Of a stretch of DNA of 64,000 nt, positions 11,617 through 42,291 are shown one piece after another; positions within the stretch are counted from its first letter, which is position 1, and the number at the start of each line of letters is the position of its first letter. Origin of the DNA: Octopus sinensis (taxonomy: Eukaryota); contig NC_043008.1 in NCBI RefSeq assembly GCF_006345805.1, forward strand, positions 34,720,001 through 34,784,000, read 5' to 3'. The notes beneath the pieces are model-generated. The model had not been told where the DNA came from, did no database searches, and was given only the letters and a program-made list of their open reading frames with translations. The position numbers and the translations under genes are program-made.

Positions 11617-11618
11617 CA

Positions 11619-11681
<63 letters not shown>

Positions 11682-14535: not shown

Positions 14536-15468
14536 ATGGAAATGGAAACACACAGAACCAACTTTGCATTCATAACAGTCAACTTCATCTTTTCTTCAAT
14601 TGGTGCTTTAATGTGTTTTATTTCACTTGTGTACAAACTTTGCAAGGGAATATCTTTACCAAAATTGTGGAAATATTCTATTTGTTTACTTGATACTTCA
14701 GCATTATTCTTTGGAATTGGTCTGGTGATGCATCTGTGTATTTTAGTACTCAATGGTACAACTCCCAAATTCCTTGTGTTGGCATCATCGAGTTTAATGT
14801 TGTTTGGATATATGGATGGTTTGTGCTCCTTTATTACATTCCAGACAATTCTATTATTTGTACAGAATCCGAGAAAGATATCCAGTACATCAAGCCATCA
14901 GCTTGGTTCCTCAATAATAGTACTTACTGGTATAAAACTTGCTTGTCTGCTCCTTTCTATTTTGCCAGTCATTCCTAAACAAGACCAACTCAAACCTTCC
15001 AGGAGCAATCTCTTCCCTCTTTATGACCCAAAAGAATCTGGGGGTACTTACACTTCTCTGTTAGTAATTTGCTTCTGGATAGTCATCGTGACCACGTTTA
15101 TTTTCAGTATTATTGGATTAGTGAAATCCCAGAAAAAAAACAGCTTGGTACATGATTCCAGTGAAGATGTCCATGTTTCTGTAATATCACAGGGACAGTT
15201 ATTACACAAAATACTCCTGGTCGAACAATGTATCTATACTATCGTAAGTATCATGATAACACGACTACTTTTTCGGCAATCCGTTTCACAGACAACCAAC
15301 AATGACCATGACACATCAATTATCACAGTTAGCATTTATCTCACACTCCATGGAATTTTCACTAACCTTGGCAATTTTCTGTGGATGAAGAAAGAATGTT
15401 GTGGAAAACCAAGTGACATTTCACAGGAATCTCGTCAACTAAAACGACTGGAACTCTTACGAACTGAG
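14536..15468 (+). CDS. 7TM-pseudokinase exon 1 (aa 1-311): seven hydrophobic segments, divergent GPCR-like domain
   Basis: ORF track 14536..15531. Hydrophobic runs at about aa 10-33, 47-72, 79-109, 125-146, 172-196, 226-246 and 262-283. NGT sequon in predicted ECL1; KECC after TM7. Donor GAG|GTAAAA at 15468/15469, phase 0. An in-frame TGA at 14500 lies upstream of the ATG. Confidence 0.85.
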
Positions 15469-15869
15469 GTAAAATATTACATTGTTTCTGTTATAGTTGT
15501 TTTTGTTATTTTTTTCTTTAATTATAATTGATGCTCCAATTATTATTGGTGCAGTTTTTAATTTCATGCCCTAATATCCTTCTTATTTCAATTTCACTGT
15601 GAATCTGTTAGACTGAATTACAATCTGGGAAAAATGAGTGGTACTTGCAATTCAAAGGACAGACCTAGTCCATTTAGTATCATTTTTCTTTTGTTTTTAA
15701 TACTTCCTGTAATGATTCACAATTCTCTTTATACCTGTTATTTCTGATAACAGAAATAGGTTGCTTTTTTTTTCTATCTTTCTTCATATTTTATAACTAT
15801 TTGCATTAGTTCCCATTTGTTATTTACAATATATATTTGTAATCCAAAGAAAAAGAAAAAGAAAAGGGA

Positions 15870-16440
15870 ATGAGATTAAGCAGCAGAAGGACGGGAAATT
15901 CCATGTTCAGTTGCACCCTGTGGACAAGACTGTGATGCTGTTGCCATGGAGAATAGCCTGCAACACTCATGGCAGTGGCCACCCCATCTTGCATGGCTTG
16001 TTTCTCAGACAGGCTGCAGTTATCCCAATTTTTTGGAGGAAATTGGCTGTGCATGGTCCAAAAACACCTTATTGGCTTGATGGTGACAGTCAGGCTCCCA
16101 TATTTGTTTGTGCTTCTCTCCTCTGCGTTATGGGCAGCAATATCTGGGTTTGTGGCTGATGCAACAAGGTTGGAGCCAGAGAACATGTTGCTGCACATCA
16201 TGTCCCAGGCTAGGGATCTACCTCCCTTGTATGGGGAAAGAGTTATTCCATCAGAGTGCTTTCCATACCTGCAGTTGAGGCCTACTGGCTCAGTTGAGAT
16301 GGGAAGCCAGTGACATCAAGGCCCCTTCTAATTATGTCATTCAGAGCAGCATATAGCTGCAGGAAAATGGCTGCAGGCTGAATTCATCAAGTACTGCTCC
16401 ACAATGGCATTTTTCCAGCACACACACTTGGAGACTGAGG
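15870..16440 (-). mobile_element. Decayed restriction-like endonuclease (RLE) region of a CRE/NeSL-type non-LTR retrotransposon
   Basis: Minus translation LNDIIRR.LDVTGFPS..EPVGL...GKHSDGITLSPYKGGRSLAWD.MC...AAHNAEERSTNKY fits the EP.GL..DGKRPDG.TL.PW..G..L.WD pattern. Confidence 0.7.
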
Positions 16441-19179
16441 TACTGGGTCACTCTGATCTTAGTGGACAAGACCTTTTGTGATTTGTGTTTGCATTATTTT
16501 TTTAGTGTGCATATTCCATAATATAGGTGTATGGCTTCCAGTACATGAAATCTATCTGGATGATAGATTATTTAATCAGTTACCTAATTAACATCATCAC
16601 AACCACCACCACCACCACCCAACTGGCCCTTGGTTACCTTTAGTGGAATGCACTCATTCACAAATATCTGAATCAGGTCTCCAGCATAAAGGTAACTTTA
16701 TTTTTTTTAGTTTCGAAAGTCATGTAAAAAGTTATGGGTACTGTCTTCCTCTTCTGACTAAAAACTTTGAATAGTTTGGTTAATATATTCTTTTTGTGAA
16801 GGCACGTGGTTAAGTGGTTAGGGTAATCAGCTCTGATTGTAAGGTCATGAGTTCAATTCCTGGCAGAGCAAGACATTTTTTGATTTCATGTTGCTCCAGT
16901 CTACTCAGTTGGCAAAAATGAGTTGTACTTGCAATTCAAAGGACAGACCTAGTCCATTTGGTATCATCTTTTTTTGTTTTATTTTTAATACTTCCTGTAA
17001 ATTCTCTTTATAGCTGTTATTTCTGATAACAGAAATAGGTTGCTTTTTTTTTCTATCTTTCTTCATATTTTATAACTATTTACATTAGTTCCCCATTTGT
17101 TATTTACAATATATATTTGTAATCCAATAGCAGATATTTTATAATAATTTTATAACTGCTGACAACCTCTGCCTCTTTGTACTTATGGGAATATGCATTA
17201 CTTCTTAGTCAGATACTGGGTGATGTCTTCCATATGCATTCATTATTTTACCTGTTTTGTTTTGACAATTCACTTGACCTCCTGTTGAAAATATAACTAT
17301 AACTTATTACGAGTGTAGCTAAACCTTCAATACACAGTATCTTAACATTCACTTTCATTTTAAGAGTAATCTACTACGTCCCTAACATCCTTTACCAATT
17401 GTTTTCTTCCATTTTTTAAAACTCCATCTACCACATTTTTCAGTATAGAAGTCACTGAAGTATATAGTGTAAACATGTAAATATCATCCCTATCTTATCA
17501 AATCCTTCTGTATTTCGCATGGAAATATTGGTCCTCCAGATTTTTGTTCTTTTGGTTGTAAATTTTGATCTGAAAAATTCAACTTGTTTACCAGAAAATA
17601 GAGTACTCTTTTACTTGTTTCAGTCATTTGACTGCAGCCATGCTGGAGCACCACCTTTAGTCGAGCAAATCGATCACAGGACTTATTCTTTGGAAGCCTA
17701 GTACTTATTCTATCAGTCTCTTTTGCTGAACTGCTGAGTTACGGGGGACGTAAACACACCACCATCGGTTGTCAAGCGATGTTGGTGGGGACAAACACAG
17801 ACACACAAACATATACACACACATACATATATACATATATACGACGGGCTTCTTTCAGTTTTCATCCACCAAATCCACTCACAAGGCTTTGGTCGGCCTG
17901 AGGCTATAGTAGAAGATACCTTCCCAAGGTGCCACGCAGTGGGAATGAACCTGAAACCATGTGGCTGGTAAGCAAGCTACCTACCACACAGCCACGAATT
18001 CATTAAATTCTAAGTATTTGTAAGAATTTAATTTTTTTTACTCCATCTCGTTCATTATTTCTCGAGTATTTGTAAGTTTGTATTTGGCCTAGATCTGTTA
18101 TCATAATTTCTGAATCTAACATGGTATTACTAATCACATTAATTCTCCACTCTTTAAAGTAGCTTTGGTTTATTTTCCCAAACTGAATTTCATGCCATTT
18201 CCCCTTATAAAATCTTTTTCATGTTTGTCATTTGCAGCACACAACTTGAGGCCATCAAGAGACCATTGATTATCTCCACTCCATAGCATTTTTATCTGCT
18301 TCCACTGTAGGTGCATGGCTTAGTGGTATTTGACTCACAATCATAAGTTTGTGAGTTTGATATCCGGTAGAGCATTGTGTCCTTGGGCAAGACACTTTAT
18401 TTCAAGTTGCTCCAGTTCACTCAGCTGGCAAAAATGAGTAGTATCTGTAAATCAAAAGGCCAGCTTTGTCACATGCTGTGTTACGCTGAATCTCCCTGAG
18501 AACTACACCAAGGGTACATATATCTGTGGAGCGCCCAGTCATATGTGCGTTAATTCCATAAGCAGGCAGTGCCATTGCTCAGATCAACAGGAACCCTTAT
18601 TGTTGTAACAAACAGTGTGTCAGTTTAACAAATTGGTTAAAGAGTATAAGTTCCAGAAAGAAAAGAAAAGAAAGAAGAGTAAGATAAAAAGAGAGAGATA
18701 GAGAGTCCTTTTGGAATATTTCCTGTGACAGAGACTAATTTTTTTCACAGATCCCTATTTTGATAAGATCTGTTTTAATGTCTTCTGTTAATCATGGCAT
18801 GTTTTATTTACCTGGTTGTTATTAATGCTACCTTACTCATAACTAATATCATGAATTTACAGGTAAAGAAGATAGTGAAAAGCCCACAGTTAATCACTAA
18901 GTAACATGCTCAGACCATTCTTTCCTTTACAACGGTTTTGAATTATGATTTTGATTTTTGTTATCAGGTATACATTTGCATGAAACTTTTCAGCATCTTT
19001 TCTGTTTTACTGGGTGTGCACCTATTTTTTATAATTAGATTGTCATTAAAGGTTTTTACATTAACAGGAAGCAGGTTATGACCAAGAAGTTTGCGAGGAT
19101 TTTGAGGAATTAGAATGTCTCCCTTTATGAAGCTAGGCTCATCCTAACAAGAAACTCTGAAAGTGAAAAACACCCAATT

Positions 19180-19640
19180 GATTCTACTGTTATCCCGTAC
19201 CCTACTAGATCTGGATTTATTCTACTGTTATCACATACTCTAGCACCAGATGTATTCTGCTGTTATCACATAGCTTAGCACCAGATGTATTCAAGTACTA
19301 TTACATACCCTCCTAGCATTGGATCTACTTTACTTTTATCATATGGATCCATTCAACTGTTATAATATAGCCCAACACCAGATTTATCCAACTGTTATGA
19401 TATACCCTAGCATGTGAAATATTTTTCTGTTATCCCACATCCTCCTAGCACTGAATCTATTCAAGTGTTATCACATACTTTCCTAGTGCTGACTGGATCT
19501 ATTCTACTGCTATCACACACCCTAGCACAAGATGGACTCTATTATTATCACATACCCTCCTAGTGTCAGATCTATTCAGCTCTTATCACATACCTTAATC
19601 TGGATCTATTCTGCTGCTCTGTGATAACCCTGCTATTGGA
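19180..19640. repeat. Degenerate ~40-bp tandem repeat (~10 copies)
   Basis: Recurrent ctactgttatcacataccctagcac...atctatt units. Confidence 0.75.
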
Positions 19641-20784: not shown

Positions 20785-20823
<39 letters not shown>

Positions 20824-21904
20824 GTTTAACATCTGTTTTCCATGCTGGCACAGGTTGGACAGTTTGACTGAGGTTTGGAGAGCCAGAGGCTGCACCTGGC
20901 TCCTGTATGATCTGGCAATGTTTCTACAGCTGGATGCCCTTCCTAATGCCAACCACCATGGCTTTGATCATGTATGGATAGTGCTTTTTACGTGCCACTG
21001 GCATAGCCCACATTCAGATGGTGCTTTTTCATGCCACCGGCACAAGAGCCAATCAGGCAGTCCTGGCATCGATCATGTTCAGATAGTGCTTTTTACATGC
21101 CATGGGTACAGGAGCCAGTCTGGGGGTACTGGCATCGACCACATTTGGATTATATATGTATATATATACTTCCTGCAGACTTTGTGGCATGACTACATAA
21201 CATATTACTGTACTATCACTAACTTGCACCAGAATGTAATCATACACTGATTAAATTTGGATTTTTATGAGGCATCTTTTTGAAGAAAAACCCATCTTTT
21301 AATAATTCAATTTCGAGCTAAATATATTAATAATAGATTGCTCATAAAAAGTACAACTAGACTGAGCTGCAACAAGAATTCTCATTACGTTTTCACAAGT
21401 AATTCAATGATTTACATTATTAGTGACAGAAGTAGGTTTAATTCAGAAAAGCAATCAGTATATCTTACTTAATGTGGATATAGTGTAAGAAAGCCACAAC
21501 ACTACAGTATTCATCTTGAGAAAGCGTCTCATTTAGACATATAGATATAATGTTTTTAACCACTGGTCTGTTCAGTCAGAACTAGTCTATGAACAAACAA
21601 CAATTCATACAAACTCATATTGCGTGAGTGTATGTGTGTGTGTGAGCATGTGTGTGAGTGTGTGTTTGTGTCTCCTTGGCTTGGCATCTCATGATAGTTG
21701 TAAATGATTGTCACTGTCATACATGCAGTGTCATTCATCACCAGCATATTGCAAGAACATGCCTGGCCATGGAGAAATTATGCTGCTATTTGTTATGGAT
21801 TTCATTAGAACTATTTTTATTCTTGATATGTGTCTGGAAAAGGTAAGTCCTGATTGATTGAGAGAATAGCTTATATCAGAAGATATTTCATTGTTATTTT
21901 ACAG

Positions 21905-22146
21905 CACTCTGGTAAACATCACTTCTTAGCTTCTTGGATCGACAACAAGAAATTCCTTCAAACAGGTCTAATGAAAACCTACAGTCAAAATTGGCAGAAA
22001 CTGTGGGCACAAGAAATCATGGTTCTTGGAATGTTACGAAAGGTGAAACACCCAAATCTATTGCAGTGTCTTTGGACAAGCAACACTAACCCTTATTATG
22101 AAATTGTTTCTTTACTCAGTCAAGATACAGTTTCTAGTGATTCAAG
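21905..22146 (+). CDS. 7TM-pseudokinase exon 2: kinase N-lobe (HSGKHHFLASW...GLMKTY...WAQEIMVLGMLRKVKHPNLLQCLW)
   Basis: Acceptor ttgttattttacag|CAC (phase 0), donor TCAAG|GTATTG (phase 2). Contains the beta3 Lys (21974-21976), the alphaC Glu and an HPN-like subdomain IV. Confidence 0.88.
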
Positions 22147-22214
22147 GTATTGCTGTTTTTATTATTCTACCAAATAAAATAATAATGATAATAATAATGA
22201 AATTATTGTATACA

Positions 22215-22455: not shown

Positions 22456-23164
22456 ATAAAAAAACCCCACCAAAGATTCAGGTACATCTATTACACACTA
22501 GCAGTCACTATATGCAACACACTACTATATACTACATACTAACACCCCAATGCAGTCATGGGTAAACTGCAAGCTGTGGGGCTCTCTGAATAGCATGCCA
22601 AATGAAACATTATGTTCAATTTATTTAGTTGTGCAGTCCACCCTGATGATGAACCATGTCTCATGTGGCCTGCTTCTCAAAAAAGGTTACCCATGCCTAA
22701 CCTAGTGCAACGGTTAATAGACTATCATTTACAATACACCACTTCCATTTACAACACTACCAACATAAATATTGCTTTCAAATTTTGGCATAAAGCCAGA
22801 AATTTCAAGGAAGGGGTTAAGTTGATTACATTGACCCAGTGCTCACAGTGCTCAACTGGTTCTTATTTTTATTGACCCTGAAAGGATGAAAAGGAAAGTT
22901 GACCTTGGCAGAAATTGAACTCAGAAAGTAAAAATTAGCAAAATACCACTTAGCATTTTTCCTGGCATGCTAACAATTCTGCTAACTCACCACCTTGTAT
23001 CAACATAAATACTACCACAATATACAACATGCTATCACTATATGAAATGTACAGGCACAGCATCAATTTTCTGCAACCTTTGGTTCCATAGTCATTCTGA
23101 ACAACTGATTTTTCCAAACCAGCAGTAGTTATACTCTAAATTGAACAAATATTAAATTTACTTA

Positions 23165-23581
23165 GGCGCAAGAGTGGCTGTGTGGAAAGTAGCTTGCTTA
23201 CCAACCACATGGTTCTGGGTTCAGTCCCACTGCGTGGCACCTTGGGCAAGTGTCTTCTACTATAGCCTCAGGCCGACCAAAGCCTTGTGAGTGGATTTGG
23301 TAGTCGGAAACCGAAAGAAGCCCGTCGTATATATGTATATATATATATGTGTGTGTGTGTATATGTTTGTGTGTCTGTGTTTGTCTCCCCCCACCCCAAC
23401 ATCGCTTGACAACCAATGCTGGTGTATTTGCATCCCCATAACTTAGAGGTTTGGCAAAATAGACCAATAGAATAAGTACTAGGCTTACAAAGAATAAGTC
23501 CCGGGGCCGATTTGCTCGACTAAAGGCAGTGCTCCAGCATGGCCGCAGTCAACTGACTGAAACAAGTAAAAGAGTAAAAGG
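23165..23581 (+). mobile_element. SINE family A copy (intron 2)
   Basis: Colinear with 301-705. Confidence 0.85.
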
Positions 23582-24538
23582 TAATTAAATGAAATACAGG
23601 TACATTATTATAAATAACACAATTTTATCAATTTAGTACCATGCAAGGTACCAGTAGACTAGTCTGGCAGCTGCAGGAATCTGAAGTTTCTGTTCATATA
23701 TTAGTGAAGATTATGAGTTTCCAGATCACCAAAATCTGAAAAGTCGGTGTTCTACCTGTACTAATATATACAAAATTCTACTACCATCTACCACAAAACA
23801 TTACCACCTAATGCAAAATATGCTACCAGTATGTACAACACTCTATTATTATGTACAGCACATTAGCACCGTGTACAACACTTTATTCCTATATATAGAT
23901 CACAACCACCACATGCATCACGCTACGTACAACACCCTACTAACAAGTACAATACAATAAAAAAAATGATAAACATCGCCCTTTTCAAGCCTAGCCAGGC
24001 TTATGGGCCTGGTTTCCAGTTTCTGTGGCGTATGTGTTCCCCCCAGCTGGACGGGACGCCAGTCCCATCGCAGCATTACTCAAGAAACAGGAAGAGAGAG
24101 TGAGAGAAAGTTGTGGCAAAAGAGTACAACAGGGGTCACCACCACACCCTGCCGGAGCCTTGTGGAGCTTTTAGGTGTTTTCGCTCAATTAATACACACA
24201 ATACCCGGTCTGGGAATCAAAACTGCAAGTTTGCTGCCCTAACCACTGGGGCATTGTGCCTCCAGAACAAGTACAATACACAACATACTCAATGTACCAC
24301 CTAATGCCATACAGTACCGCTATGAACAAATATTTTTATGTGTTGTACTTTAATGGTAGTGTGTTGTATATTGTTTATGTTAGTAGTGTATAATATGTGG
24401 TAGTAGTGTGTTGTGTGTACAGTGATAGTGGTTTGTATATCTCTACCCTCTTCATAATTTATTGATTGTATCATTATTTAAAAACATTTTTATACTATAT
24501 TAAACAAAGAATAAAATTTATTCTATTTTGCTTTTAAG

Positions 24539-24734
24539 GATTATCTGCATGGAATTTCCTGAATATGGATGTCTACGGGAATATCTTAAGAGTATGGAAA
24601 CTCCACTGTCTGCAGCAACACAGTGTATGATTATAAGCGATGTATCACAAGGTCTGCAACAGCTACACCGGCTCGACATTCTGCACAAACATCTCTCTTC
24701 AATCAGAGTTTACCTTCGAGGCAACAATGGGAAT
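24539..24734 (+). CDS. 7TM-pseudokinase exon 3: hinge and catalytic-loop region (IICMEFPEYGCLREYL...ISDVSQGLQQLHRLDILHKHLSSIRVYL)
   Basis: Acceptor ttttgcttttaag|G (phase 2, completes AGG Arg), donor AAT|GTAAGA (phase 0). Clear subdomain V-VIb pattern with HKH at 24684-24692 in place of HRD. Confidence 0.9.
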
Positions 24735-24802
24735 GTAAGATGTTTAATATTTTACAGAATTTTTTGCAAAAAAAAATGTAAATTTGTTTTATATTTGTAA
24801 GA

Positions 24803-25220
24803 CTCTTTACTCTCTCTTTACTCTTTTACTTGTTTCAGTCATATGACTGTGACCATGCTGGAGTACCACCTTTAGTCAATCGAGCAAATCGACCCCAGGA
24901 CTTATTCTTAGCCTAGTACTTATTCTATCAGTCTCTTTTGCTGAACCGCTAAGTTACAGAGACGTGAACACACTACCATCGGTTGTCAAGCAATGTTGGG
25001 GGGGACAAACACAGACACGCAAACATATACACACACATACATATATATACATATATACGACGGGCTTCTTTCAGTTTCCGTCTACCTAATCCACTCACAA
25101 GGCTTTGATCGGCCTGAGGCTATAGTAGAAGACACTTACCAAAGGTGCCACACAGTGGGACTGAACCCGGAACCACGTGGTTTGTAAGCAAGCTACTTGC
25201 CACACAGCCACTCCTACACC
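24803..25220 (-). mobile_element. SINE family A copy (intron 3)
   Basis: Reverse complement is colinear with 301-705. Confidence 0.85.
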
Positions 25221-25655
25221 TACCTCATTACTTGAAACCACTTCAATTGACTGCCATCCTTCATTCTTACATCGTCCTATTCATTCACATTTTACATTGA
25301 TTACTCCACTTTTCTATGTTATAAAATTACATCACCCTCTATCTTTCCACTGAATAAAATCAGACTATAGGAATTTAACTCAATTCCATTATAATTGCTG
25401 AAGTATTGCAGATGAAATGTTAATAGCCCTATCCAAATCTCACCCTTCCCTAGATCTTTTAGCACTAGGAGGAGTATACCTTAGTATATCACAAGCTTTG
25501 CTACTCCTATTCACACATACAAATGAAGAATACAGTGTCATTCTTGCGTTTCATATGTAAGTGTTATATATAGAGATAAAGAATTTCTGTGTGTAGACAT
25601 ACCCATAATTACCATATGATGATGATTAAGCATGAAATTATTTCTTTCATTTCAG

Positions 25656-28208
25656 AATTCGTTGTTTCGTGCTGCCCTTGGGGATTTTGAATATGTAAGC
25701 ATATTTGGGTCTCTACTACAAGGAGCAGATAACCCAACATGTAAGAGTCGTCAAACATTCTTCCTTCCGGACATTCGATCTTTCGCTCTGATTACTCTGG
25801 AAATGATTCTGTCAGTATGTGACAAATTAGTCCAAATGCCAAAAAAGAATCGATATCAAAATGTAAAGACACAGAAGTCTAATCCACAAAGTATATCTGA
25901 TGCAATGTTCAACAAGGCAACTCAGTGGCAACCATTAGTTAAACCCGAGAATAAAACTGTTGTAAAGGGTAAATTGGGTTTTTTTCCTACGGCAAGTGAA
26001 GAGAGTTTACATAAGAACTGGAGTGAAATGAATCCAAATTCATTAGATAAAAGTAAAATTCCTCAGACACAGCAAAGAATAAAAACAATTTTTGTAGCTC
26101 CGGCTAATAATGCAAACATTGTGCCATCAGAGTTTTCTACAGGATTTTCAAGGCATTCTTCAATTTCACCTGGAAATGAAGATTCCCTTAGCAGCAACAT
26201 CTCTATGCTTGTAGAAGCTGGGAAGGATAGTGACAGTGAAATCAGTCCAACTGAATTCAATGACTTTATTTCACCATATGAAGATAACAAACAAGATGAC
26301 TTTATCTCAGAAAATAAGTTCATTGATAGGAAAACATCAATAGATTCTGATCCTTATAATTATCACTGGAGCTTTTTCACAAATAAACATAATTATAGCC
26401 CTCACAGCTTCTTTTTCAATGAACAATTCTCTAAAAGCTTTTCTGAAGAAAATAATTTAAACACACCAGAAAGTAGTAAAGATGACACACATATGAGTGG
26501 TGAAACAGCAGCTTTTCATGAGAAAATTCAGAGCCACCCAAGGAAAGATGTCAATAACATAGTTGATCAAGATTATATTTCAGAAGAAAATCACTTGAGA
26601 AAAGTTCAGAGAAAGAATAAAGCAAGAATGAATTTACAGAAAACACTGACTTCTCGAGGAATGGCTTTTAATAATGTTTCATCTCAAAAACAAATAAAAG
26701 ATACCTTTAAAAAAAAGAAACAATTTAATGATACACAGTCTCAAAAACCATCTCTAACTCATATTAATTCTTCTAATTCAGTATTGCCAGGGAATAAAAC
26801 CATTCTTTCTAATCCTAATAACCATTGTAGACCTTTTAATAATAAAGTCAACAATGAGTTCAGGGAAAATACAAATGATTATCAGTTCAGTTGTTCCAGC
26901 AGTTATCAAACCAACAACAGCTCTGATTTGGAATCATCTCAGAATTTTTCTTGTGATTACACTACTGATATATCTTGTCTTTCTTCAGCAACTGAAGCTT
27001 TAACTCGAAAAATTCTAAGGGAAGAAAAGTCATTATTTCAAAGGAATAATTCAGCTGACGATATACACAGGAAAATCATTGACAGTGGTTTTGAAACGGA
27101 ATCTAATCCTTCCAACACTTCTAACCAAATAATATGCCATCACAACTCTGAGAAACAGCAATGGCTGGAGAACTGCTTTGACATGAAAACAAAAGAGGCG
27201 GAATTCTTACCAAGTTCAGATGATTATTTATATATATCTAACAATAATTTCAGTATGCAAAAGAAATCATGTTTAATGTCCAACCAAGATAGTCCCATCT
27301 ATAGTCCTTCAAATAAGAGCAGATTTGTTTATCCAACATCGAGAAATGGTAATAGTTGTTCAAGAAGTGATGAAGTATTTGAGACAAGTTCTTATAGAGC
27401 CTATGATAACAAAGTTAGTAATTCTGAACTTCCATTAATGAAATCTGAATTACAGAATAGCAACAATGCTTCAAAACGATACAGAGAACTTAAACGTAAA
27501 GGTGTACCACTGAAAATATCAATTGTGTCATCAAATACTTCTTCAAATTTTAACCATTTCTCAAACTGTTCACCCAGTATATCAGCATGTTCAGAAGTCA
27601 CAACACCGGACATGGATTCCAAAAACATATTTTTCCCTCAACAAATGTCACCATACTCAACAAACGAGCATTATGATAGAACATATGATGATTACCAAAG
27701 AAAAAATAGTGCCAGTTTATTTAAACAATCACTTGGAGACAGCCCAGTATTTACAACTAAAGTAATTGGCAGCCCTTGCCCACCCACACCAACAACTACT
27801 ATCCCTAGCTCTCTATTCATGACAACAGAGAGACCAATCCTTGAATCTCGTATCAGTTGTAGTGACGTTCCAGATTTTGGTGGGAACTGGAAAATTGGAC
27901 CAAAAGGGAACAATGTGCAAAATCAAGACACAATTTCAGTTCCCAGTCGGCAATTGAGTCGACTTAACAGTGGAAGTTTATCTCACTGCTCCTCTTTATC
28001 TCACCTCAGTTTGCCAGGGAAAACCATTCAAGGAAAATACAAACTTTTACCTGGAGTAAATGAACATCATCTGGGTTATTGCATTGATCTAGTGGAAAAA
28101 CAATCCTTCCTCTCTATAGATGATTTATTACCTGCTTCACAAAGTGCCTTTAATCATCTTAAAGACAAGCTCAGTGCAACAGGTGAACTAACAAATGCAG
28201 CTAAACAG
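25656..28208 (+). CDS. 7TM-pseudokinase exon 4 (851 codons): DFE motif, alphaF-like PDIRSFALITLEMI, then a long Ser/Asn-rich low-complexity insert
   Basis: ORF track 25632..28262. Acceptor tttcatttcag|AAT (phase 0), donor CAG|GTAAGG (phase 0). AALGDFE (DFE at 25683-25691) matches the AKIGDFG position. Confidence 0.9.
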
Positions 28209-28824
28209 GTAAGGAACTTTGTAAATCTTATAACTCTTCTAGCATTTATCCTGCTTGTGTAGGGTTCACTTATTCTACTAATATATATAGATGTTGGTTC
28301 AATCAATGTATCATTCAGTCTGATCTGTGAGGCCTGTCACCACCAGTCATGCCTTGCAGGACCCGTTTCTCACCATAAGGAGGTCACCACTACGAGGCAG
28401 ATTCTGAACTCAGAATGCAAAAAGCCATTTCAGGTATCACAAGGAATCTTGTTCAATGCTGTAATAATTCCTCCTTCACTGCCTTTGTGTTTTATTTATT
28501 AACCCCCAAACAGATAAAAAGCAAAGTTGATCTCAGTGGAATTAGAACTCAAAGAGCACAGAAATCTGTAACAAATGACCTCATAGTATTTTATCAAATG
28601 CTGTATGATCCCTGAAAAATCACTAACTTTGATTTATATAAAAATTAAATTTGCTTTGATTGTGTTATAAACAGTTGAAGTTGACAAAGTAATGTTACTG
28701 TAGTGACACACAGAGGCTTAGTGATGAATGGGATGGGTGAGTGGGGGAATCTGTTTTCTTTTTCCTGGGTGGAGGTGTTAAAAGCACAAAATTCTTTCTA
28801 TCCATCTATTTTCCATCTTCTCTG

Positions 28825-29058
28825 TCCATTATTCCTGGAAGGGTTATAAGGATAGAGTCCTATAGTACCTCCTCCATAGGGTCCCATTATTCCTGGAAGG
28901 GTTATGGGGATAGAGTCCTATAGTACCTCCTCCATAGGGTCTCATTATTCCTGGAAGGGTTATGGGGATAGAGTCCTATAATACCTCCTCCACAGGATCC
29001 CATTATTCCTGGAAGGGTTATGAGGATAGAGTCCTATAGTTCCTCCTCCATAGGGTCC
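28825..29058. repeat. Minisatellite, 4 x 58 bp
   Basis: cattattcctggaagggtta... recurs at 28827, 28885, 28943 and 29001. Confidence 0.95.
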
Positions 29059-31070
29059 TATCAGAATCCACCTTCATTTGATTTTTTGGTTGAATTCTCA
29101 AGTATAACCAACTGAGACTATGGATATTATCCATTCATCTCATTCTTGGTCTACCCTAGGTCACCTGCAGGTTGGCTTGTCTTGAAGAATCTGTTCTGCT
29201 ATTCTTTCCTGTAACTTTTTTTATCACATGTTCATAGCACTGGAGCTCTTTCAGTCATTACTCAATATTCATGACCATAGATGAGGATAAGCATGAAAAG
29301 TGAATTGAAGACAACAACTTTGGCTTTTTTACCAACCTCTTCTCTCCTGAGAATCGAATGCTGGATCTGGTGCATTATTATGCTAGCAACTGTAATCCTA
29401 GCATCCAATTAAGCCTCTTGCCTTCCATCTCTTATGAATAAATCCCCAAGAAACTTAAAATCTCATCTTGCCTTAGTGGTGTTCCACTAATATGCAGAGG
29501 GCACTGAGATGAGTTTCTTGAGAGGATCAATGTCTCAGTCTTTGAAATACTAATTCTCAGCCCTGCCTTACAGCACTCAGCATTGAACCTGTTCAATATA
29601 TCTTGCAGATCACCATCTAATGACCCAAGTAGCCCCATACCATCTGCAGATATCAGCTGCTTGGTCCTACATTCATTGATTGTGATACCACTTCCATAAT
29701 GGCTGCACATGCTAATCCAGTTTATAAAAATTATGAAAAGGTGAAGTGACATTACACACACTAGCCAAAGTTCAACGCCCACGTTAAAGGGTTTTGGCAT
29801 AGCACCATTTACCCAAATTCAGACAAATGGGCATTTATGAAGGAACTTAAAAGCAACCACAAGTTGCCCATTAATCCCAAACTCTTGTAAAACCCTCCAC
29901 AGCATGTCCTGTGATACCTGGTCATATGAGTTTTTGAGGTCTACAAAGTAAGTGTACACCTCTTTTAATAGTCCCATGATTTCTCAAAGACCTTCCATAG
30001 AGTGATTACCTGGTTAGTTGTGCTGCTTCCAGGATGGAAACCACACTGTTCTTCAGCAAGCTTTGGGTTCAACAATTTCCCTACATTTCTTTTCCAGATA
30101 CCTAGTGTAAATTTTACCAGGAAGACTCAAGGAGAGGATTCTTCTATAACTAGAGCACTCATTCATGTCCCTCTTTTTAAAAATTGGGATTATCATCCTG
30201 GATTGCCATTGCTTTGGTATCTTTCCAGAAGTCCAAACCACCTGCCTTACACAAATCAATCAGAGAATATCTTTGATATTTAAAGCTGTTAACATCTCAG
30301 GTCAAATTTAATCTTCTCCAATGGCCTTACTGTGTTTGAGCATTTTAATCACTTCTATAACTACAGTGTCTTTGAGGTTAGTCTTCACTCCTTGATGTAC
30401 TTCGTATCCACCAGAAGATTTTATCATGACCAGATTTAAGAGGTCAGCAAGGTATTCTCTTTACCTCTTAAGAATGCACCTCTCTGCAGAGAGAACTCCA
30501 TCCTGGTTCTTAATGGTATGTGTGGGATAAGACTTCTTGGGCGTAACTTCGGTATACGTACCGGAAGTACCGGATGCATTTCAGCGAAATGATTTTTTTT
30601 ATATATATGGGGGGTTAGGGTTGGGGTTTGTGTTAGGGTTAGGGTTAGGGTTAGGGGTGGGAGAAAAGGGTTTCTGTTATCTTCAGAAATGTAAACAAAG
30701 CCACTTCCGGTACTTACAATACGTATACTGAAGGATCACCGACTTCTTGTTATGAAATTGGCAGATGGTTTGCCAAAATACTTTATTGGCCAATCTAAAA
30801 TCAGAACCCAGCTTAAACCCAAAGTCCTTAAAAACTTTTGGCACCTCAGTGTACTGCTTGTGCAAAAGAGATTTGTTTCCAAGCCAAGCTTTGTAAGTTC
30901 CCTTCTTTGCTCAGTTGGCATTTTTAACTTCCTGGTTAAATCAGGGGTTTCTTTTGTCACCCGGTGTCACATTGAGTTGCTTTCATCCTCAGCATTTTAC
31001 AGCCAAAGAATAAACTACCAACAAAGCAATCTCCACTCCATTTTGACATCCTCAGTCAGTTTCTGAATCT
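29050..31070 (-). mobile_element. Decayed RTE-like LINE reverse-transcriptase region in intron 4 of the 7TM gene
   Basis: ORF-track pieces 30053..30259 (IPKQW..MIIPIFKK.D..ECSSYR.I.L.SLPGKIY) and 29432..29800 (LISADGMGLL, the YADD position; GL.IS.SKT; FLG). Frameshifted. Confidence 0.85.
30540..30740. mobile_element. Merlin-like MITE with internal TTAGGG repeats, inserted into the LINE
   Basis: 9-bp direct repeat gacttcttg at 30531-30539 and 30741-30749. TIRs begin GG (ggcgtaacttcggtatacgt / revcomp ggtgatccttcagtatacgt). Confidence 0.75.
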
Positions 31071-31313
31071 GGATGCAACAGTGACTGCACATTTCCTCCT
31101 TTACATAATTATGCCTGTTAATTACAAGGTGAGCAAGTTAAATATGTCTTTGTCCCCAAGCACTGAAAACCTTTGCTATGCCACTGAATACGCACATGGT
31201 AGTGGCAATGGTAGTGGTGGGGACGATGGTAGTGGTGTTGATATTAATGGTCATAGTAGTACTGTTAATGATGGTCGTGAAACTAAGTGTTGGGAGTAAT
31301 TCTTGCTGGTAAA

Positions 31314-31440
31314 AGCAGTAGCAGCAGCAGCAGCAGTAGCAGTAGCAGTAGTAGTAGTAGTAGTAGCAGCAGCAGCAGCAGCGGTGTTGGTTGTGGTGGT
31401 GGTGGTGGTGGTAGCAGTGGTGTTGTTGCTGGTGGTGATA
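31314..31440. repeat. Mixed (GCA/GTA/GGT)n trinucleotide repeat
   Basis: Direct reading. Confidence 0.9.
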
Positions 31441-34400
31441 CGAGAAGGTTGATCATGGATGAATAACACTAATTTCCTCTCTTTTTTTAGCATCATGGAT
31501 ATATGCTGAGTATAATGTATAATAATCAGTTGTATATAGCTCAGTATTTATAACAACAACAACAACAATCATTCTTTCTACTTTAAGCACGAGGCATGAA
31601 ATTTTGGGGTAGAGGTTAGTTGATCCCATCAACCCCAATGCTCTACAGGTACTTATCTTTATTGACCCTGAAAGGATAAATGATAAAGTTGACCTTGAAC
31701 TTAGAATGTAAAAGCCATAACTAAAAATTGTATTAATCCTTTCTACTAAAGGCATGACATTTTTGAGAGGGGACCAGTTCATTACATTGACCAACAGTAT
31801 TTCACTGGTACTTATTGACCCCAGAAGGATGAAAGGCAAAGCCAGCCTCAGCAGAATTTGAACTCAGAACATAAGAACAAACGGAATGCCGTGAAGCTTT
31901 TTGCCCAGTGTGCTAACAGTGTGTGTGTGTGTTCCTGATGCATTTGAAAACTGAGTTGCCGGTTTTGATGTATGGGGAGTCAAAAGATTCAGTAATCTTT
32001 TGGCTACCAAATAAACTTTATTTTCATTTACATATTTTCTATGTTATCTCAGCAACCATTTATAGTTATTTGAAAGACACTAATAAAGTCTAATCCACAA
32101 AGTATATCTGATGTAATGTTCAACAAAGCAACTCAGTAGTGCTAAAAGATCTAGGGAAGGGTGAGATTTGGATAGGGCTATTAACATTTCGTCTGAAATA
32201 CTTCAGTAATTATAATGGAATTGAGTTAAACTCCTAAAGTCAGTGATTTCATTCAGTGGAAAAGTAGGGGGAGAGGTAATTTTATAGCATAGAAAGGTGG
32301 AGTAATCGATGTAAATTCAGTAATGAAATAGGCTTCATTAGAAAGTGAAAGTAGCTTCACACTTTCAATTTGAACAAAAATTACAAAGTATTGCATTACA
32401 AGAGTGACAATGTGTGAATAATGAAAGTAATATTTTTCAGAATTAGTCACTTACTACAAGACATCCATTTCTCTATATGTTATGAGAAAATACAGTCACT
32501 CACTCTCTCTCTCTCATGCACACATACATACAAAAAAATATTTATGTATGTGTATATGAAAGATAATATGTGTATGTGTGTGTGTGTGTGAGAGAGAGAA
32601 AGAGAGAGCGTAATTGAGTGTCACACATACATGCAAAAGAATACATACATGACAACACACACCTTCACTCACTCATTTTCTCTCTCTCCTCTCTCTCCTT
32701 CCCCTCTCTCTCTCTCTCCCACATGCACAAGCGCGCACACACACACACATCCATTCCATATACACTCTCTTTCACTTTCTGCTCTCACTTCAAAGCAAAT
32801 GTCACCTTTCCACTTTCTCCTCTCTTCAAAGCATAAAGAAATAAAAAATTTTTACAGAAATAAACGAACAATCATTTGATTCCATATGATCGACCATATG
32901 ATCAAGTTGACAACTTTGCTGCTTCAAATGAATGCCATAAAATAACTTCCTTTCACAGATACACACACATACACCCCCACCCACACACAATAGGTAAAAC
33001 CTCTGTACAAATTATGCTATTTCTTGCTGTGTGTACATATAAAAATTACAGCTCAAATCCAATTGAAATGATCTTTTTCTATTCTGTAATTCATATTTGT
33101 GATGAGCATATTTAAAAACCTGTTCTTTGCTATAAACTTAAAAGGAAGTTTTCCCAGAAATCCTGTCCTTTACCTGTTATTTCTAGCATGTCCAAGGTGA
33201 CATTTGTGCTCCCTATCCTTATCTTTTCCTAAATTTCTTCCGATTCCTGTTTTCGATATAGAAAATCAGTATTTCACCCAAAAATATGTTCTCAATATAT
33301 TTTCTCCCTTCTGACCCCAATTTCTTCATTTTTTTACTTTTTTCCAAATTTTTTCTTGGTAATCCACAGAGAAAAAACAAAGTATGAATCTTTAAGAATT
33401 TTCTTTTTCCTTTTTTCTTAAAGAAACACTAAAATCTCCTTCTCAAACATCCACCCATCACCTCACCACTTTCAAAAAGTTACAAACTCCCAATGTTCCA
33501 CTTTTAGCTATTTGGAAAGCTAGAAAGTTTCTTCAGAATAAATGTCGTTTACCTGTTGTTTCTAGCATGTCAGGTTTTCTGGTGTGGGAGGTTTTAGCTT
33601 TTTGAAAGTGGGTAGGTGATGGGTGGGTGAGGCGAGGGAAGGGGTATTGAGCATTTCTTTAAGAAAAATTAAACTTTTAAGCATAAATATATTTCCTAGA
33701 TTTGTAATGTTTTTCTACGTGGGTAAAAAAAAAAAATTTGAAAAACTTACAAATTAAGAAATTGCAATGGGGACAGGGGGAAATTAAAATTTTGAAAATG
33801 TGATTTCTGAGCAAAATTGTTATATGATGAAATAATACATAATTTGTGATCCTTCCTAAGAACAGAACGCACTTTCATGCAAATCTATGCAAATTGTACC
33901 CTCCCTCGCTTCACTTTTAAACAAACAATAACTTCCATTATGCCAGTAATCTACTTCACTATATATCAGCTGTGCCAATTCTACCCATAAGAAAAGAACG
34001 AATAATACAATGTGACTGTAAGTCATAACACTTGGGCATAAAACTAACTATTTATCATCTGTAGATTATTTTTAAGTAACCACTAATTTCAATATAAATA
34101 TGAAGTCTTTAGTATGTTGTTGTTTTCTATATAATTGTAGGCATATTTTAGTTGTCAAATGATAAAGAACAAAGATTTATTCAATTAATTGCTACTTGTA
34201 ATTAATTATAAAATTGAACATTTATCTTCTGCTGATTTTTCACAACAACCTCTAATTTTAATATAGATATGAACTTTTTAATATAAGCAACCTCAGATAA
34301 GCTGGATTTTAAAAGAGATAATATAAATTATAGGCCAATCTAAAATCAGAACCCAGCTTAAACCCAAAGTCCTTCCAACTTTTGGCACCTCAGTGTACTG

Positions 34401-34659
34401 TTTGTGCAAAAGAGATTTGTTTCCAAGCCAAGCTTTGTAAGTTTCCTTCTTTGCTCAGTTGGCATTTTTAACTTCCTGGTTAAAATCGGGAGTTTCAAAC
34501 AAGTCATCAGTTTGTCTTGACCAATTATATTCATTAGAAATCAACCACCACTAGCAATATTCCATAATACCCAATGAAGTCATTAAGACACCACAGAGAA
34601 TTCTATTTTCCTTTAGTCAGATTCAGTAGCAGATACACTGAAGTAATTCATTGATATAT

Positions 34660-35260
34660 TGTTGTCATTTTGCTAGTCTTGTTTGGGGCATGCAAATGCC
34701 AAAAATTTTAACAACTTTCACTAAACTGCCAGAAAAAAATTCTCATCATCAGGTGGCAGGATAAAATTTCCAATACTCCTGTGCTCAAAAGAGCTAATAT
34801 ATCAAGTATGTATGATTTCCTAAGCAAATTCCTGGTATGGTGGAGTGAACATGTAATACACATGCTTGACTTCAGACTTTCTAAACAGATCTTCTTTAGT
34901 GAACTAGCATCTGGCTCTCAGTCATGTGGCAAACCACAAGAGAGATATAGAGACATGCTCAAGACAATGTTGAAAAAAGCTCAACTTAAAGTAGTCTGTT
35001 TTGGAACATTTTGTTCATGATCGCTCACTGTAGAGTAGTACTGTGTACTTTTGGAGGCCAGCACTCAGAATGAGTTATGATCAGATAAGCTAAAGAGACA
35101 AGAGCTGCAAGGAAAGCAAAAAAAAAAAAAATCCCACTGGGTCATGACTCTGTTAAAATGTGCCCCTGTTGTAACTGTGGATTTCATGCTGAAATTGGCC
35201 CAGTAAGCCACCTCAGAACCCATAAATTGTAAAGCTGATAATCTGGTTATCTTCAGAGGC
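34660..35260 (+). mobile_element. RTE-like LINE 3' fragment
   Basis: ORF 34781..35020 (W..HV..M.D.RL.KQIFFSEL..G....GKP..RYRD.LK) followed by a C..C..H..H-like finger. Confidence 0.7.
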
Positions 35261-35868
35261 ATGAAGGACAAACCCTAATATTCTTGTTTAGCTCCTGATT
35301 GATTAGAATATAATGAAAAACATCCCAGTTATGATGACCATAACTCATCTTTCCCTTTCTTTTTCTTGATATAAACCTACATTATCCTATATCTCTTTTT
35401 CTTTCTTTTTTTTACCAAGTTGGTATGATGGGGATATGACTGATATTTTTAGCAGGTTGAGAGACTGCTTAGAGGCTCACTCATTGGCATTGGCATATGG
35501 TAAAAATTGATTCCAGTACTACAAGTTAACAATACACTCTCAAGTATAAACCAAAGAGGGAACATCTCTGCAGTCACTCAGCTTGCTAGAAATAACATTC
35601 AAAATATTCCTCAACTCACACCCTACCTTCTTTAATAAAGAAGGACACAACAGACAATGCAGTCTCTGGAAAGCAAAAGAAAGGATAATCACAGCTAGAA
35701 TGCCTTTGACCATAGTTCTGCTTGACCAGAGCTTTAAAAATTGTTAGTTTTATGTTTGGATTAGAAATATGCATCATAAATATATTAATATATTCTACAT
35801 ATGATTGTGTCAGTTTATGAAAATGTTGATATATTCTATATATTCTTTCTGTATTTTTTTTACTGCAG

Positions 35869-35970
35869 TTGATGGACATAGTGGTATCATGCTGGTATGT
35901 TGAATCACCTCCATTGGCAGCTAAACTATGTGAACAGCTGAAGGATCCAGTTATGGAAACAACTGTTTGA
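35869..35970 (+). CDS. 7TM-pseudokinase terminal exon 5: LMDIVVSCWYVESPPLAAKLCEQLKDPVMETTV* (kinase subdomain XI-like plus PDZ-binding tail)
   Basis: Acceptor gtattttttttactgcag|TTG (phase 0). Translation resembles the LYDLMxxCW...LxxxL kinase C-terminus. TGA at 35968-35970 is followed by TAA. Too short for the ORF track. Confidence 0.8.
   Translation: MMDIVVSCWYVESPPLAAKLCEQLKDPVMETTV

Positions 35971-40630: not shown

Positions 40631-40661
<31 letters not shown>

Positions 40662-42258: not shown

Positions 42259-42291
<33 letters not shown>

Follow-up and report, generated by a model that had tools for sequence, protein, structure and literature searches.

We found that a locus of the octopus Octopus sinensis is one real gene encoding a multipass membrane protein, in which a seven-helix domain, a short linker, and a kinase fold follow each other in a single polypeptide. 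Profile comparisons assign the seven-helix part, which is strongly diverged, to the relaxin/glycoprotein-hormone (LGR) branch of class A GPCRs, and the kinase part, which is interrupted by a long insert, is predicted to be a pseudokinase. On the basis of this architecture, we propose that the protein probably acts as a noncatalytic receptor scaffold. All positions refer to the window, i.e., the whole 64,000-nt stretch analyzed (assembly GCF_006345805.1, NC_043008.1:34,720,001-34,784,000, forward strand).

Gene model and transcript evidence

The gene comprises five exons on the + strand (14536-15468, 21905-22146, 24539-24734, 25656-28208, and 35869-35970), which are preceded by AG and followed by GT wherever splice borders are expected. 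Their lengths of 933, 242, 196, 2553, and 102 nt combine in frame into 1341 codons and a stop, and the spliced product matches the NCBI entry "uncharacterized protein LOC115217889 [Octopus sinensis]" along its full length with 100% identity. Exons 4 and 1 lie in open frames far longer than any other in the window (878 and 342 aa, respectively, read stop to stop), and comparison with a second Octopus species gave a dN/dS of 0.28 for exon 4, which together argue that these exons are not chance ORFs. None of the other long ORFs in the 64-kb window has a significant Pfam match. The sequence from the second species (P0003, 85% identical) was considered as a transcript and rejected because it is exon 4 on a genomic contig, read from stop to stop; its use was confined to the dN/dS estimate.

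The exon junctions are based on the NCBI model and on cDNA-like contigs of a cephalopod orthologue (P0004), which has an unbroken 4182-nt ORF on contigs of 4.5-5.3 kb from four sequencing runs. When mapped to the window with tblastn, this orthologue aligns in five collinear segments, which correspond to the five exons. Thus, splice borders, reading frame, database identity, and orthologue mapping agree with the proposal of the earlier note that five exons with matching phases encode one 1341-aa protein. The 6.4-kb intron between exons 1 and 2 might nevertheless suggest that a receptor gene had been wrongly joined to a kinase gene downstream of it. Against such an annotation artefact, exon 1 itself encodes helix 7 together with the first kinase strand and the conserved LKRLEL motif, both parts lie within the unbroken ORFs of the cDNA-like contigs from the four runs, bivalve homologues (P0013 and P0017) are found at full length on Logan contigs that are only 6.2-6.5 kb long, and the same architecture is independently predicted in at least nine invertebrate lineages. 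We consider an artefact of this kind exceedingly improbable and already close to refuted. The features of the protein are collected in Table 1.

Table 1. Features of the octopus gene and its product (positions in the window; domain assignments are predictions)
Feature	Positions	Strand	Residues (aa)	Exon	Basis
Seven-transmembrane domain, class A GPCR-like, putative LGR/relaxin-receptor lineage	14536..15399	+	1-288	1	Hydropathy, AlphaFold, Foldseek, profiles
Juxtamembrane linker CGKPSDISQESRQLKRL	15400..15450	+	289-305	1	Translation, alignment
Kinase strand beta1 (ELLRTE)	15451..15468	+	306-311	1 (end)	AlphaFold, alignment
Remainder of kinase N-lobe	21905..22146	+	312-392	2	Alignment invariants, AlphaFold
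Hinge, alphaD/alphaE, degenerate catalytic loop	24539..24734	+	392-457	3	Pfam, PDB profile matches
D-F-E in place of DFG, activation-segment remnant, alphaF	25656..25844	+	458-520	4	Alignment, AlphaFold
Low-complexity insert of 720 aa in kinase C-lobe	25845..28004	+	521-1240	4	Composition, motifs
Conserved C-terminal block LLPGV...DLLPA...LKDKL	28005..28208	+	1241-1308	4 (end)	Conservation, AlphaFold
CW...PP motif and C-terminal tail	35869..35970	+	1309-1341 and stop	5	12-member alignment

The seven-helix domain and its ancestry

The extracellular N terminus is only about 10 aa long, with TM1 starting at about residue 10. Hydropathy analysis and alignments revealed seven hydrophobic segments that are kept in all mollusc homologues, and AlphaFold models corresponding helices at residues 2-36, 43-72, 78-108, 120-145, 165-199, 213-247, and 255-288 (pLDDT 73-92). 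In a Foldseek search of the PDB, all of the best 50 matches are class A GPCRs (E values of 3e-5 to 4e-4), with target TM-scores mostly between 0.54 and 0.75 and lower only for chains with a large ectodomain or a fusion partner. These three lines of evidence concur on the seven hydrophobic helices described in the earlier note. The Pfam 7tm_1 model does not match the octopus protein; its best score in the family, 27.8 bits in the sea urchin Diadema setosum, falls below the cutoff of 30.5, and a fragment limited to exon 1 (P0094) scores 17.7 bits.

A topology with the N terminus outside and the C terminus inside is supported by the distribution of Lys and Arg (16 in the inner loops and tail versus 7 outside) and by a Cys pair at the top of TM3 and in ECL2 that would have to be extracellular. 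Both cysteines are missing in all three cephalopod sequences, and the pair is present in every noncephalopod member aligned, in columns that are at least 90% conserved in the lophotrochozoan profile. The same topology had been deduced from the odd helix count and an NGT sequon (aa 73-75); the orientation stands, but the sequon is weak evidence for it, as it is conserved neither in Argonauta nor in the orthologue P0004.

The assignment to the LGR branch is transitive for the octopus sequence, whose seven-helix part has diverged too far to match Pfam or PDB sequences directly. A profile of the lophotrochozoan seven-helix domains retrieves only two matches in the PDB, both of the LGR type (E values of 0.16 and 3.6), and aligns in hhalign with the corresponding deuterostome profile with a probability of 98.6% (E value of 6e-16). 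The deuterostome profile in turn matches RXFP1 with an E value of 7.6e-24, covering the seven-helix domain end to end, followed by TSHR (1.7e-16) and LGR4 (4e-12); the TSHR, LHCGR, FSHR, and LGR4 matches range from 1e-16 to 1e-10, and the remaining class A receptors in the PDB start at 2e-6. These relationships point to a strongly diverged receptor of the relaxin/LGR branch rather than to an orphan fold. The predicted homology extends to the seven-helix domains of RXFP1/2, TSHR, LHCGR, FSHR, and LGR4-6, and the LGR subgroup and the octopus-type family have in common the TM3/ECL2 Cys pair, a P-x-R...GK motif in ICL2, and a remnant of (N/H)PxxY in TM7.

Unlike the LGR receptors, members of the family have an N terminus of only 10-25 aa without an LRR or LDLa ectodomain and carry a C-terminal pseudokinase and disordered region of several hundred to more than 1000 residues. 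No LRR or LDLa Pfam match was found in the octopus protein, TM1 begins within about 15-25 residues in complete deuterostome models, and the deuterostome members scanned with Pfam have kinase matches only, plus a single 7tm_1 match. A further difference from the LGR receptors is the loss of E/DRY at the end of TM3, where the octopus protein reads ...LLFVQNPRK; no member seen has kept this position, and the E-K-Y of RXFP1 aligns to nonpolar residues.

The clear homology of the family's seven-helix part to RXFP1, TSHR, and LGR4 might be taken to mean that the octopus protein is an ordinary class A receptor coupled to G proteins and arrestins, with the pseudokinase and tail regulating only trafficking or desensitization. 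NPxxY-like remnants in deuterostomes (NPLLY in the crinoid Antedon and HPILY in Ptychodera) point the same way, as does a conserved DSGFxS motif in the insert that could be a degradation or trafficking signal. Such coupling is, however, hard to reconcile with the loss of E/DRY in every member seen and with the state of TM7 in molluscs, where the NPxxY position reads H-G-V-V-S (LHGIFTN in the octopus). Moreover, the kinase N-lobe starts about 20 residues past helix 7, a spacing that would hardly accommodate a free helix 8 or a G-protein interface. Hence, we regard ordinary G-protein coupling as unlikely and favor the noncatalytic receptor scaffold.

The split kinase fold and the C-terminal region

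The linker is preceded by a conserved Cys cluster, CC in the octopus and CCC in bivalves, which may be a palmitoylation site. AlphaFold places a strand at model residues 11-17, equivalent to aa 306-312 (ELLRTEH), that spans the border between exons 1 and 2, and family alignments reveal the LKRLEL motif to be invariant or nearly so. As strand beta1 is encoded in exon 1, the fusion point lies inside this exon; translation and the position of the strand agree in this respect with the linker of about 20 aa and the exon-internal fusion that had been noted from the sequence.

Beyond the linker, several lines of evidence predict a TKL-like protein kinase fold. The Pfam model PF07714 matches aa 377-449, with 30.5 bits for the full protein (cutoff of 23.1), 35.9 bits for the isolated region, and up to 49 bits for relatives, and a kinase profile retrieves TYK2, LIMK1, LRRK2, RAF1, and ACVR2A from the PDB at E values of 6e-15 to 3e-10. 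An AlphaFold model of aa 1-520 from a 10-sequence alignment has a good helix bundle and a kinase part with a pLDDT of 30-45. A construct joining aa 296-520 to aa 1250-1341, with the N- and C-terminal pieces entered in the alignment as separate rows, gave a pLDDT of 84.1 and a pTM of 0.68. In Foldseek, this kinase model has at least 1988 matches at E values of ≤0.001, and all 50 of the matches listed are protein kinases; over the whole construct, TM-scores reach only 0.45-0.55, with a large RMSD. A lipid kinase of the RpkA type was also considered and rejected, as the Pfam matches are to protein kinase families only.

The beta3 lysine (K335; 21974-21976) and the alphaC glutamate (E348; 22013-22015) can be recognized in the N-lobe, which lacks a GxGxxG glycine loop. 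The catalytic loop has H-K-H (24684-24692) in place of H-R-D, with Arg at the position of the catalytic-loop Asn in the octopus, and D-F-E (25683-25691) replaces DFG. The residues D467, F468, and E469 of this motif are invariant in molluscs. Helix alphaF, with the sequence PDIRSFAL, is equivalent to subdomain IX (model helix 199-222). The loss of the HRD Asp, the catalytic-loop Asn, and the glycine loop suggests that the domain is a pseudokinase. Combined with the Pfam, AlphaFold, and Foldseek results, this prediction upholds the intracellular pseudokinase of the original description.

A true seven-transmembrane receptor kinase, atypical but active on substrates or on its own Ser-rich insert, is conceivable in that K335, E348, and D467 are invariant in molluscs, and the retained Lys, Glu, and DFG Asp would be compatible with nucleotide binding and even with weak or atypical catalysis; WNK and CASK are active despite missing canonical residues. 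Saccoglossus even keeps both the catalytic Asp and Asn in its loop (H-N-D-V-T-A-T-N). Across phyla, however, the catalytic Asp position is occupied by H (octopus), N (bivalves, gastropods, Lingula, Watersipora, and Ptychodera), R (Antedon and Diadema), L (Acanthaster), or S (amphioxus), the catalytic-loop Asn is not conserved, and GxGxxG is absent. The echinoderms also lack the DFG Asp, with SEFG, SNFT, or ANFS at this point. An active enzyme thus appears decidedly unlikely, and the predicted pseudokinase is the reading that we follow below.

The insert is disordered and 71% polar or charged (16% Ser and 11% Asn) and contains conserved short motifs, among them DSGFETES (27081-27104) and SKRYRELKRKGVPL. 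The block that follows it is conserved across molluscs and is modeled by AlphaFold as helices with a pLDDT of 70-85. We propose that this block corresponds to the alphaG region of the kinase C-lobe: in a construct of the Ptychodera N- and C-terminal pieces, the Pfam Pkinase alignment runs through it. Against this placement stand the low TM-scores of the whole construct and the HMMER searches against solved kinases, which do not align the C-terminal piece. If the placement is right, the kinase subdomains do occur in order, as had been stated, but they are not contiguous, since 720 residues separate the end of the C-lobe from the rest. The CW...PP motif resembles subdomain XI, with C1316 invariant and W1317 nearly so in an alignment of 12 members that represent six phyla. 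The protein ends in ETTV (35956-35967), which resembles a class I PDZ ligand.

Distribution, related architectures, and proposed function

Full-length relatives were recovered from molluscs, a brachiopod, an annelid, a bryozoan, hemichordates, echinoderms, and amphioxus. Accordingly, the spiralians in which the earlier note proposed to look for the architecture do have it, but it is not restricted to them. In an exhaustive profile search, none of the best 150 matches comes from vertebrates, ecdysozoans, or cnidarians. Word-indexed searches recovered only molluscs with the 12-member cross-phylum alignment and only amphioxus with an amphioxus query, and they are uninformative on the wider distribution. 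Matches of about 320-350 aa with the seven-helix part only (P0027, P0048, P0067, and P0094) were considered as free-standing paralogues; they look like calls of exon 1 alone, as the four sequences read run up to the LxxLxxL at the close of exon 1 and then continue into nonhomologous sequence. The family records are all merely "uncharacterized", in line with the suspicion of an uncharacterized receptor, and the architecture is conserved among them. The one exception in naming is an amphioxus record automatically named RXFP2, a label that hides its kinase half.

A catalytically dead cytoplasmic kinase fold, presumed to be an allosteric module or scaffold, is also present in PTK7, ROR1/2, RYK, and HER3 and, as the kinase-homology domain, in receptor guanylyl cyclases. 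These proteins resemble the octopus protein in combining a membrane receptor with a noncatalytic kinase fold in the cytoplasm. They differ from it in being single-pass receptors with large ectodomains and a contiguous kinase domain, whereas the octopus protein spans the membrane seven times, is nearly devoid of an ectodomain, and has a kinase domain that is apparently split between alphaF and alphaG.

We found no prior description of the octopus-type family in the literature. In the animal lineage, GPCR-kinase fusions have been reported to be limited to choanoflagellates and sponges, with none characterized (PMC12716839). Among these "GPCR-bigrams", GPCR-TKL/K proteins occur in acanthoecid choanoflagellates, oomycetes, and amoebae, and GPCR-TK proteins occur in choanoflagellates and sponges (PMC12716839); none of either type is reported to have been characterized functionally (PMC12716839; PMC6033456). 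Outside sponges, animal fusions appear in one passing literature remark on sea urchins and felids, and sea-urchin "GPCR-TMKs" are mentioned (PMC10463195). The earlier view that GPCR-enzyme fusions are known mainly from oomycetes and Dictyostelium is thus outdated, since choanoflagellate and sponge fusions have since been reported and sea urchins figure in one sentence. In Dictyostelium RpkA and the oomycete GPCR-PIPK, a seven-helix domain precedes a C-terminal phosphatidylinositol-phosphate kinase (PMC5784254). This order of a seven-helix and a C-terminal kinase-type domain is shared with the octopus protein, but RpkA and GPCR-PIPK carry a lipid kinase, whereas the octopus matches are to protein kinases. 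GPCR-TKL/K and GPCR-TK proteins are closer in having a seven-helix domain and then a protein kinase domain in one ORF. To judge by published descriptions, the octopus-type family is set apart from them by its bilaterian distribution, LGR-like seven-helix part, and split pseudokinase. The published fusions are reported to be confined to protists, choanoflagellates, and sponges and to have originated several times with unrelated seven-helix domains, and those of the GPCR-TK/TKL proteins are reported to cluster with no other GPCRs (PMC12716839). That clustering, set against the LGR-like affinity of the octopus-type domain, argues for an origin independent of the choanoflagellate, sponge, and protist fusions, as far as they can be compared by published description.

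In the mechanism that we consider probable, the N terminus would lie outside the cell and the pseudokinase would be cytoplasmic, immediately below helix 7. When a partner protein or a ligand, either a small molecule or a lipid, alters the conformation of the helix bundle, the change would be passed to the pseudokinase N-lobe. Instead of phosphorylating substrates, the pseudokinase would serve as a conformational switch and scaffold, with partners recruited or released at the kinase fold, the phosphorylatable insert (DSGFxS and SKRYREL..GVPL), and the PDZ-binding end. Such a receptor would carry its own adaptor and depend little on G proteins for signaling.

Kinase-fold receptors of animals are almost all single pass, and animal GPCRs are thought to act via separate G proteins, GRKs, and arrestins. 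Against this backdrop, we tentatively raise the possibility, for now the less probable one, that the family represents an undescribed bilaterian-wide class, in which an LGR-derived receptor has given up G-protein coupling for a pseudokinase switch that reads the movement of the helix bundle directly, and which was apparently lost in vertebrates and ecdysozoans. If true, the union of a hormone-receptor-type GPCR with a pseudokinase in both major bilaterian branches would be a new animal receptor architecture and a natural system for the direct coupling of seven-helix movement to a kinase fold. The family would also be a further ancient signaling gene absent from the standard models (vertebrates, flies, and nematodes). 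For annotation, the lesson is that an automatic name such as RXFP2 in amphioxus can conceal the kinase half of a fusion protein.

A five-exon gene with an internal fusion

The five exons that the earlier note had spliced into a single 1341-aa protein constitute a real gene, and the product equals the reference gene model. All five exons have canonical AG/GT borders in a splice site check, and their lengths (933, 242, 196, 2553, and 102 nt) give an in-frame open reading frame (ORF) of 1,341 codons ending in TGA. No other open frame in the 64-kb window, the G+C content of which is 32 to 41% per 2-kb window, comes close in length to exon 4 (878 aa) or exon 1 (342 aa from stop to stop). Across its whole length, the spliced product shows 100% identity to the NCBI entry "uncharacterized protein LOC115217889 [Octopus sinensis]." A cephalopod ortholog, P0004 (51% identity), is encoded by an uninterrupted 4182-nt ORF on contigs of 4.5 to 5.3 kb from four separate sequencing runs, which look like mRNA. 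A tblastn search of the window with this ortholog gave five collinear matches that coincide with the proposed exons, with 0 residues missing at the junctions, and exon 4 shows a dN/dS of 0.28 relative to another Octopus species. That the fusion in this protein, already known as an unnamed database prediction, is an annotation artifact appears extremely improbable beside this evidence.

The fusion is internal to exon 1, as had been proposed. Helix 7 runs to about aa 288, and between it and the kinase-like part lie a cluster of Cys residues and a linker of 17 residues; strand β1, placed by AlphaFold at aa 306 to 312 across the exon 1/2 border, and an invariant or nearly invariant LKRLEL motif just ahead of it are encoded together with helix 7. 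The position of β1 and the conservation of LKRLEL argue strongly against the artifactual joining of two genes. The seven-helix-only proteins from a deep search whose sequences were read (P0027, P0048, P0067, and P0094) have the same LKRLEL-type end followed by unrelated sequence; we rejected their interpretation as free-standing seven-helix proteins, as they resemble exon-1-only gene calls from other unannotated genomes, a finding that suggests an old exon 1/2 boundary.

Elsewhere in the window, an interspersed SINE-like repeat of ~400 nt with an internal TA/CA microsatellite occurs at least nine times, in either orientation, with copies 60 to 93% identical; three of the copies lie within introns 1, 2, and 3 of the gene. 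The many ORFs in the window that share an 11-residue string are translations of this repeat. An inverted repeat, the 211-nt arms of which are 98% complementary and flank a 47-nt spacer, is a candidate hairpin-forming or MITE-like element, and a tandem array comprises about five copies of a 107-nt unit that are up to 96% identical. Short ORFs in intron 4 gave no match in Pfam and, judged by eye, could be decayed mobile-element remnants.

Features of the gene, its product, and the surrounding window
Feature	Position (nt)	Strand	Residues (aa)	Remarks
Exon 1	14536-15468	+		P0004 match, 14542-15468
Exon 2	21905-22146	+		P0004 match, 21875-22165
Exon 3	24539-24734	+		P0004 match, 24537-24746
Exon 4	25656-28208	+		P0004 match, 25629-28241
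Exon 5	35869-35970	+		P0004 match, 35866-35967
Predicted helices			2-36, 43-72, 78-108, 120-145, 165-199, 213-247, 255-288	AlphaFold
Glycine loop				Absent; reads xPGKxxL
β3 Lys			335	Invariant in molluscs, at least 90% across phyla
αC Glu			348	Invariant
HRD				H-K-H in octopus; H-x-N in most members
Catalytic-loop Asn				Not retained
DFG				D-F-E
Subdomain IX				PDIRSFAL
DSGFETES	27081-27104	+	933-940	Octopus copy of D-S-G-(F/I)-x-S, in disordered insert
ETTV	35956-35967	+	1338-1341	Octopus C terminus
SINE-like repeat	285-694, 4736-5075, 11428-11679, 17605-18012, 23149-23580, 24820-25228, 40607-40830, 42046-42470, 43775-43998, 59759-60150
Short ORFs	29435-30259	-		Intron 4
Tandem array	38302-38836
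Inverted repeat	46938-47406

The seven-helix half

Hydropathy, structure prediction, and structural comparison agree on the seven-helix bundle claimed in the earlier note. The seven hydrophobic segments are conserved in position in all mollusc homologs, and an AlphaFold model of aa 1 to 520 has seven helices with a pLDDT of 73 to 92. The best 50 Foldseek matches in the PDB are all class A GPCRs, including CB2, TSHR, GPR3, S1PR1, and the β1-adrenoceptor (E = 3e-5 to 4e-4; target TM-scores mostly 0.54 to 0.75; ~12% sequence identity). Since the octopus region matched nothing in Pfam, and nothing convincing was recovered when its profile was searched against PDB sequences, we assigned it to a family through its relatives. 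The lophotrochozoan and deuterostome profiles align over 271 columns (hhalign probability, 98.6%; E = 6e-16), and the deuterostome profile in turn matches human relaxin receptor 1 across its entire seven-helix domain (E = 7.6e-24), followed by TSHR, LHCGR, FSHR, and LGR4 (1e-16 to 1e-10), with other class A receptors appearing only from 2e-6. At E < 10, the lophotrochozoan profile retrieved only two PDB sequences, both LGR-type, and the Diadema setosum member scores 27.8 bits with Pfam 7tm_1 (cutoff, 30.5). The seven-helix part thus belongs, as a highly divergent member, to the relaxin/glycoprotein-hormone (LGR) branch of class A GPCRs, the octopus link being transitive.

Several defining features of that branch have been lost. 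With TM1 beginning near residue 10, the typical leucine-rich repeat ectodomain is absent. In every family member, a nonpolar residue occupies the E/DRY position, and NPxxY reads NPLLY in the crinoid, HPILY in Ptychodera, and H-G-x-x-(S/T) in molluscs. For a class A-like bundle with these substitutions, we consider it unlikely that the protein couples to G proteins or arrestin in the ordinary way, its tail being regulatory; such coupling would be compatible with the adaptor role proposed below.

The NGT sequon (aa 73 to 75) from which an N-out/C-in orientation had been argued is present but not conserved, even in Argonauta. The orientation itself has good indirect support: Lys and Arg number 16 in the predicted inner loops and tail versus 7 outside, the tail carries cytoplasmic-type motifs, and the ancestral Cys pair (one residue at the top of TM3, the other in ECL2), which must face outward, is kept in every noncephalopod member, cephalopods having lost both residues together. 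An N-out/C-in topology is accordingly the probable one.

The kinase-like half

Pfam PF07714 matches aa 377 to 449 (30.5 bits, cutoff 23.1; 35.9 bits on the excised region). Family profiles match TYK2, LIMK1, LRRK2, RAF1, TNNI3K, KSR1, and ACVR2A in the PDB (6e-15 to 3e-10), a spread that marks the domain as TK/TKL-like with no clear subfamily. With the catalytic Asp replaced and both the glycine loop and the catalytic-loop Asn missing, its sequence qualifies it as a predicted pseudokinase by the usual definition, in keeping with the original reading. Across phyla, the catalytic position is H, N, R, L, or S, and it is Asp in Saccoglossus only. Given these losses, residual kinase activity is quite unlikely; with the β3 Lys, αC Glu, and DFG Asp kept, nucleotide binding is possibly retained.

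After helix αF lies a 720-aa insert (71% polar or charged, 16% Ser, 11% Asn), beyond which the final ~100 residues are conserved again and include a CW...PP motif that resembles subdomain XI of TK/TKL kinases. A construct joining aa 296 to 520 to the last 92 residues was modeled by AlphaFold (mean pLDDT, 84.1; pTM, 0.68) with the expected N-lobe strands, αC, αE, αF, and four C-terminal helices; Foldseek gave at least 1,988 matches at E ≤ 0.001, and all 50 best shown are kinases, bearing out the kinase fold. In the equivalent Ptychodera construct, the Pfam Pkinase alignment takes in the C-terminal piece as well and reaches profile position 247 of 263. The Foldseek TM-scores are only 0.45 to 0.55 and HMMER did not align the C-terminal piece with solved kinases, so that we regard completion of a split C-lobe by the C terminus as likely and no firmer.

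Within the insert, 19 of the 22 members, spanning molluscs to echinoderms, carry D-S-G-(F/I)-x-S, which matches the β-TrCP phosphodegron consensus and is a putative degron; SKRYRELxxKGVPL is common to molluscs. Most members end in (S/T)-x-(V/L/I) (ETTV, ETEL, VTEI, STDI, ETPL), a pattern typical of class I PDZ ligands.

A bilaterian family and its proposed working

An exhaustive profile search recovered full-length members outside molluscs in the brachiopod Lingula, the annelid Owenia, the bryozoan Watersipora, the hemichordates Ptychodera and Saccoglossus, the crinoid Antedon, amphioxus, the starfish Acanthaster, and Diadema sea urchins. Databases call them "uncharacterized," "hypothetical," or "protein kinase domain-containing," and we found no account of them in the literature, in line with the suspicion that the orthologs are not a described family. 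One public record names the amphioxus member P0091 (Branchiostoma lanceolatum) "RXFP2," an automatic name that mirrors the seven-helix part and conceals the kinase half. A further database protein, P0038 (2911 aa, ENA), matched the kinase-core part of the profile at 10 separate places along its length, a pattern suggesting that it contains many kinase-like segments in tandem.

GPCR-kinase fusions are already known as a kind of protein: a 2025 survey of GPCRs among relatives of animals reports the GPCR-TKL/K type from oomycetes, amoebae, and acanthoecid choanoflagellates and the GPCR-TK type from choanoflagellates and sponges (PMC12716839). Sea urchin "GPCR-TMKs," mentioned in a single sentence elsewhere (PMC10463195), may or may not belong to the present family. 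Literature searches for a seven-helix protein or GPCR with a pseudokinase, and for an LGR or relaxin receptor with one, did not find the present architecture, nor was it found in a survey of lophotrochozoan class A GPCRs or a paper on starfish relaxin receptors. What appears new is a bilaterian-wide family, the probable derivation of its seven-helix part from the LGR/relaxin receptor lineage (transitively so for octopus), and a kinase half that is a split pseudokinase rather than an active enzyme.

The domain architecture is shown, as are its conservation across phyla and the missing catalytic residues; the mechanism that we consider most likely is inferred. The protein would sit in the membrane with a minimal extracellular face, so that a ligand, if there is one, would be small, lipidic, or partner presented. 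The pseudokinase N-lobe would be held straight below the helix bundle, so that when helices 6 and 7 move, the kinase fold could change its conformation or its pairing. Together with the disordered insert, which could be phosphorylated, and the putative PDZ-binding end, the kinase fold would recruit or release cytoplasmic partners, making the protein a receptor with a built-in noncatalytic adaptor.
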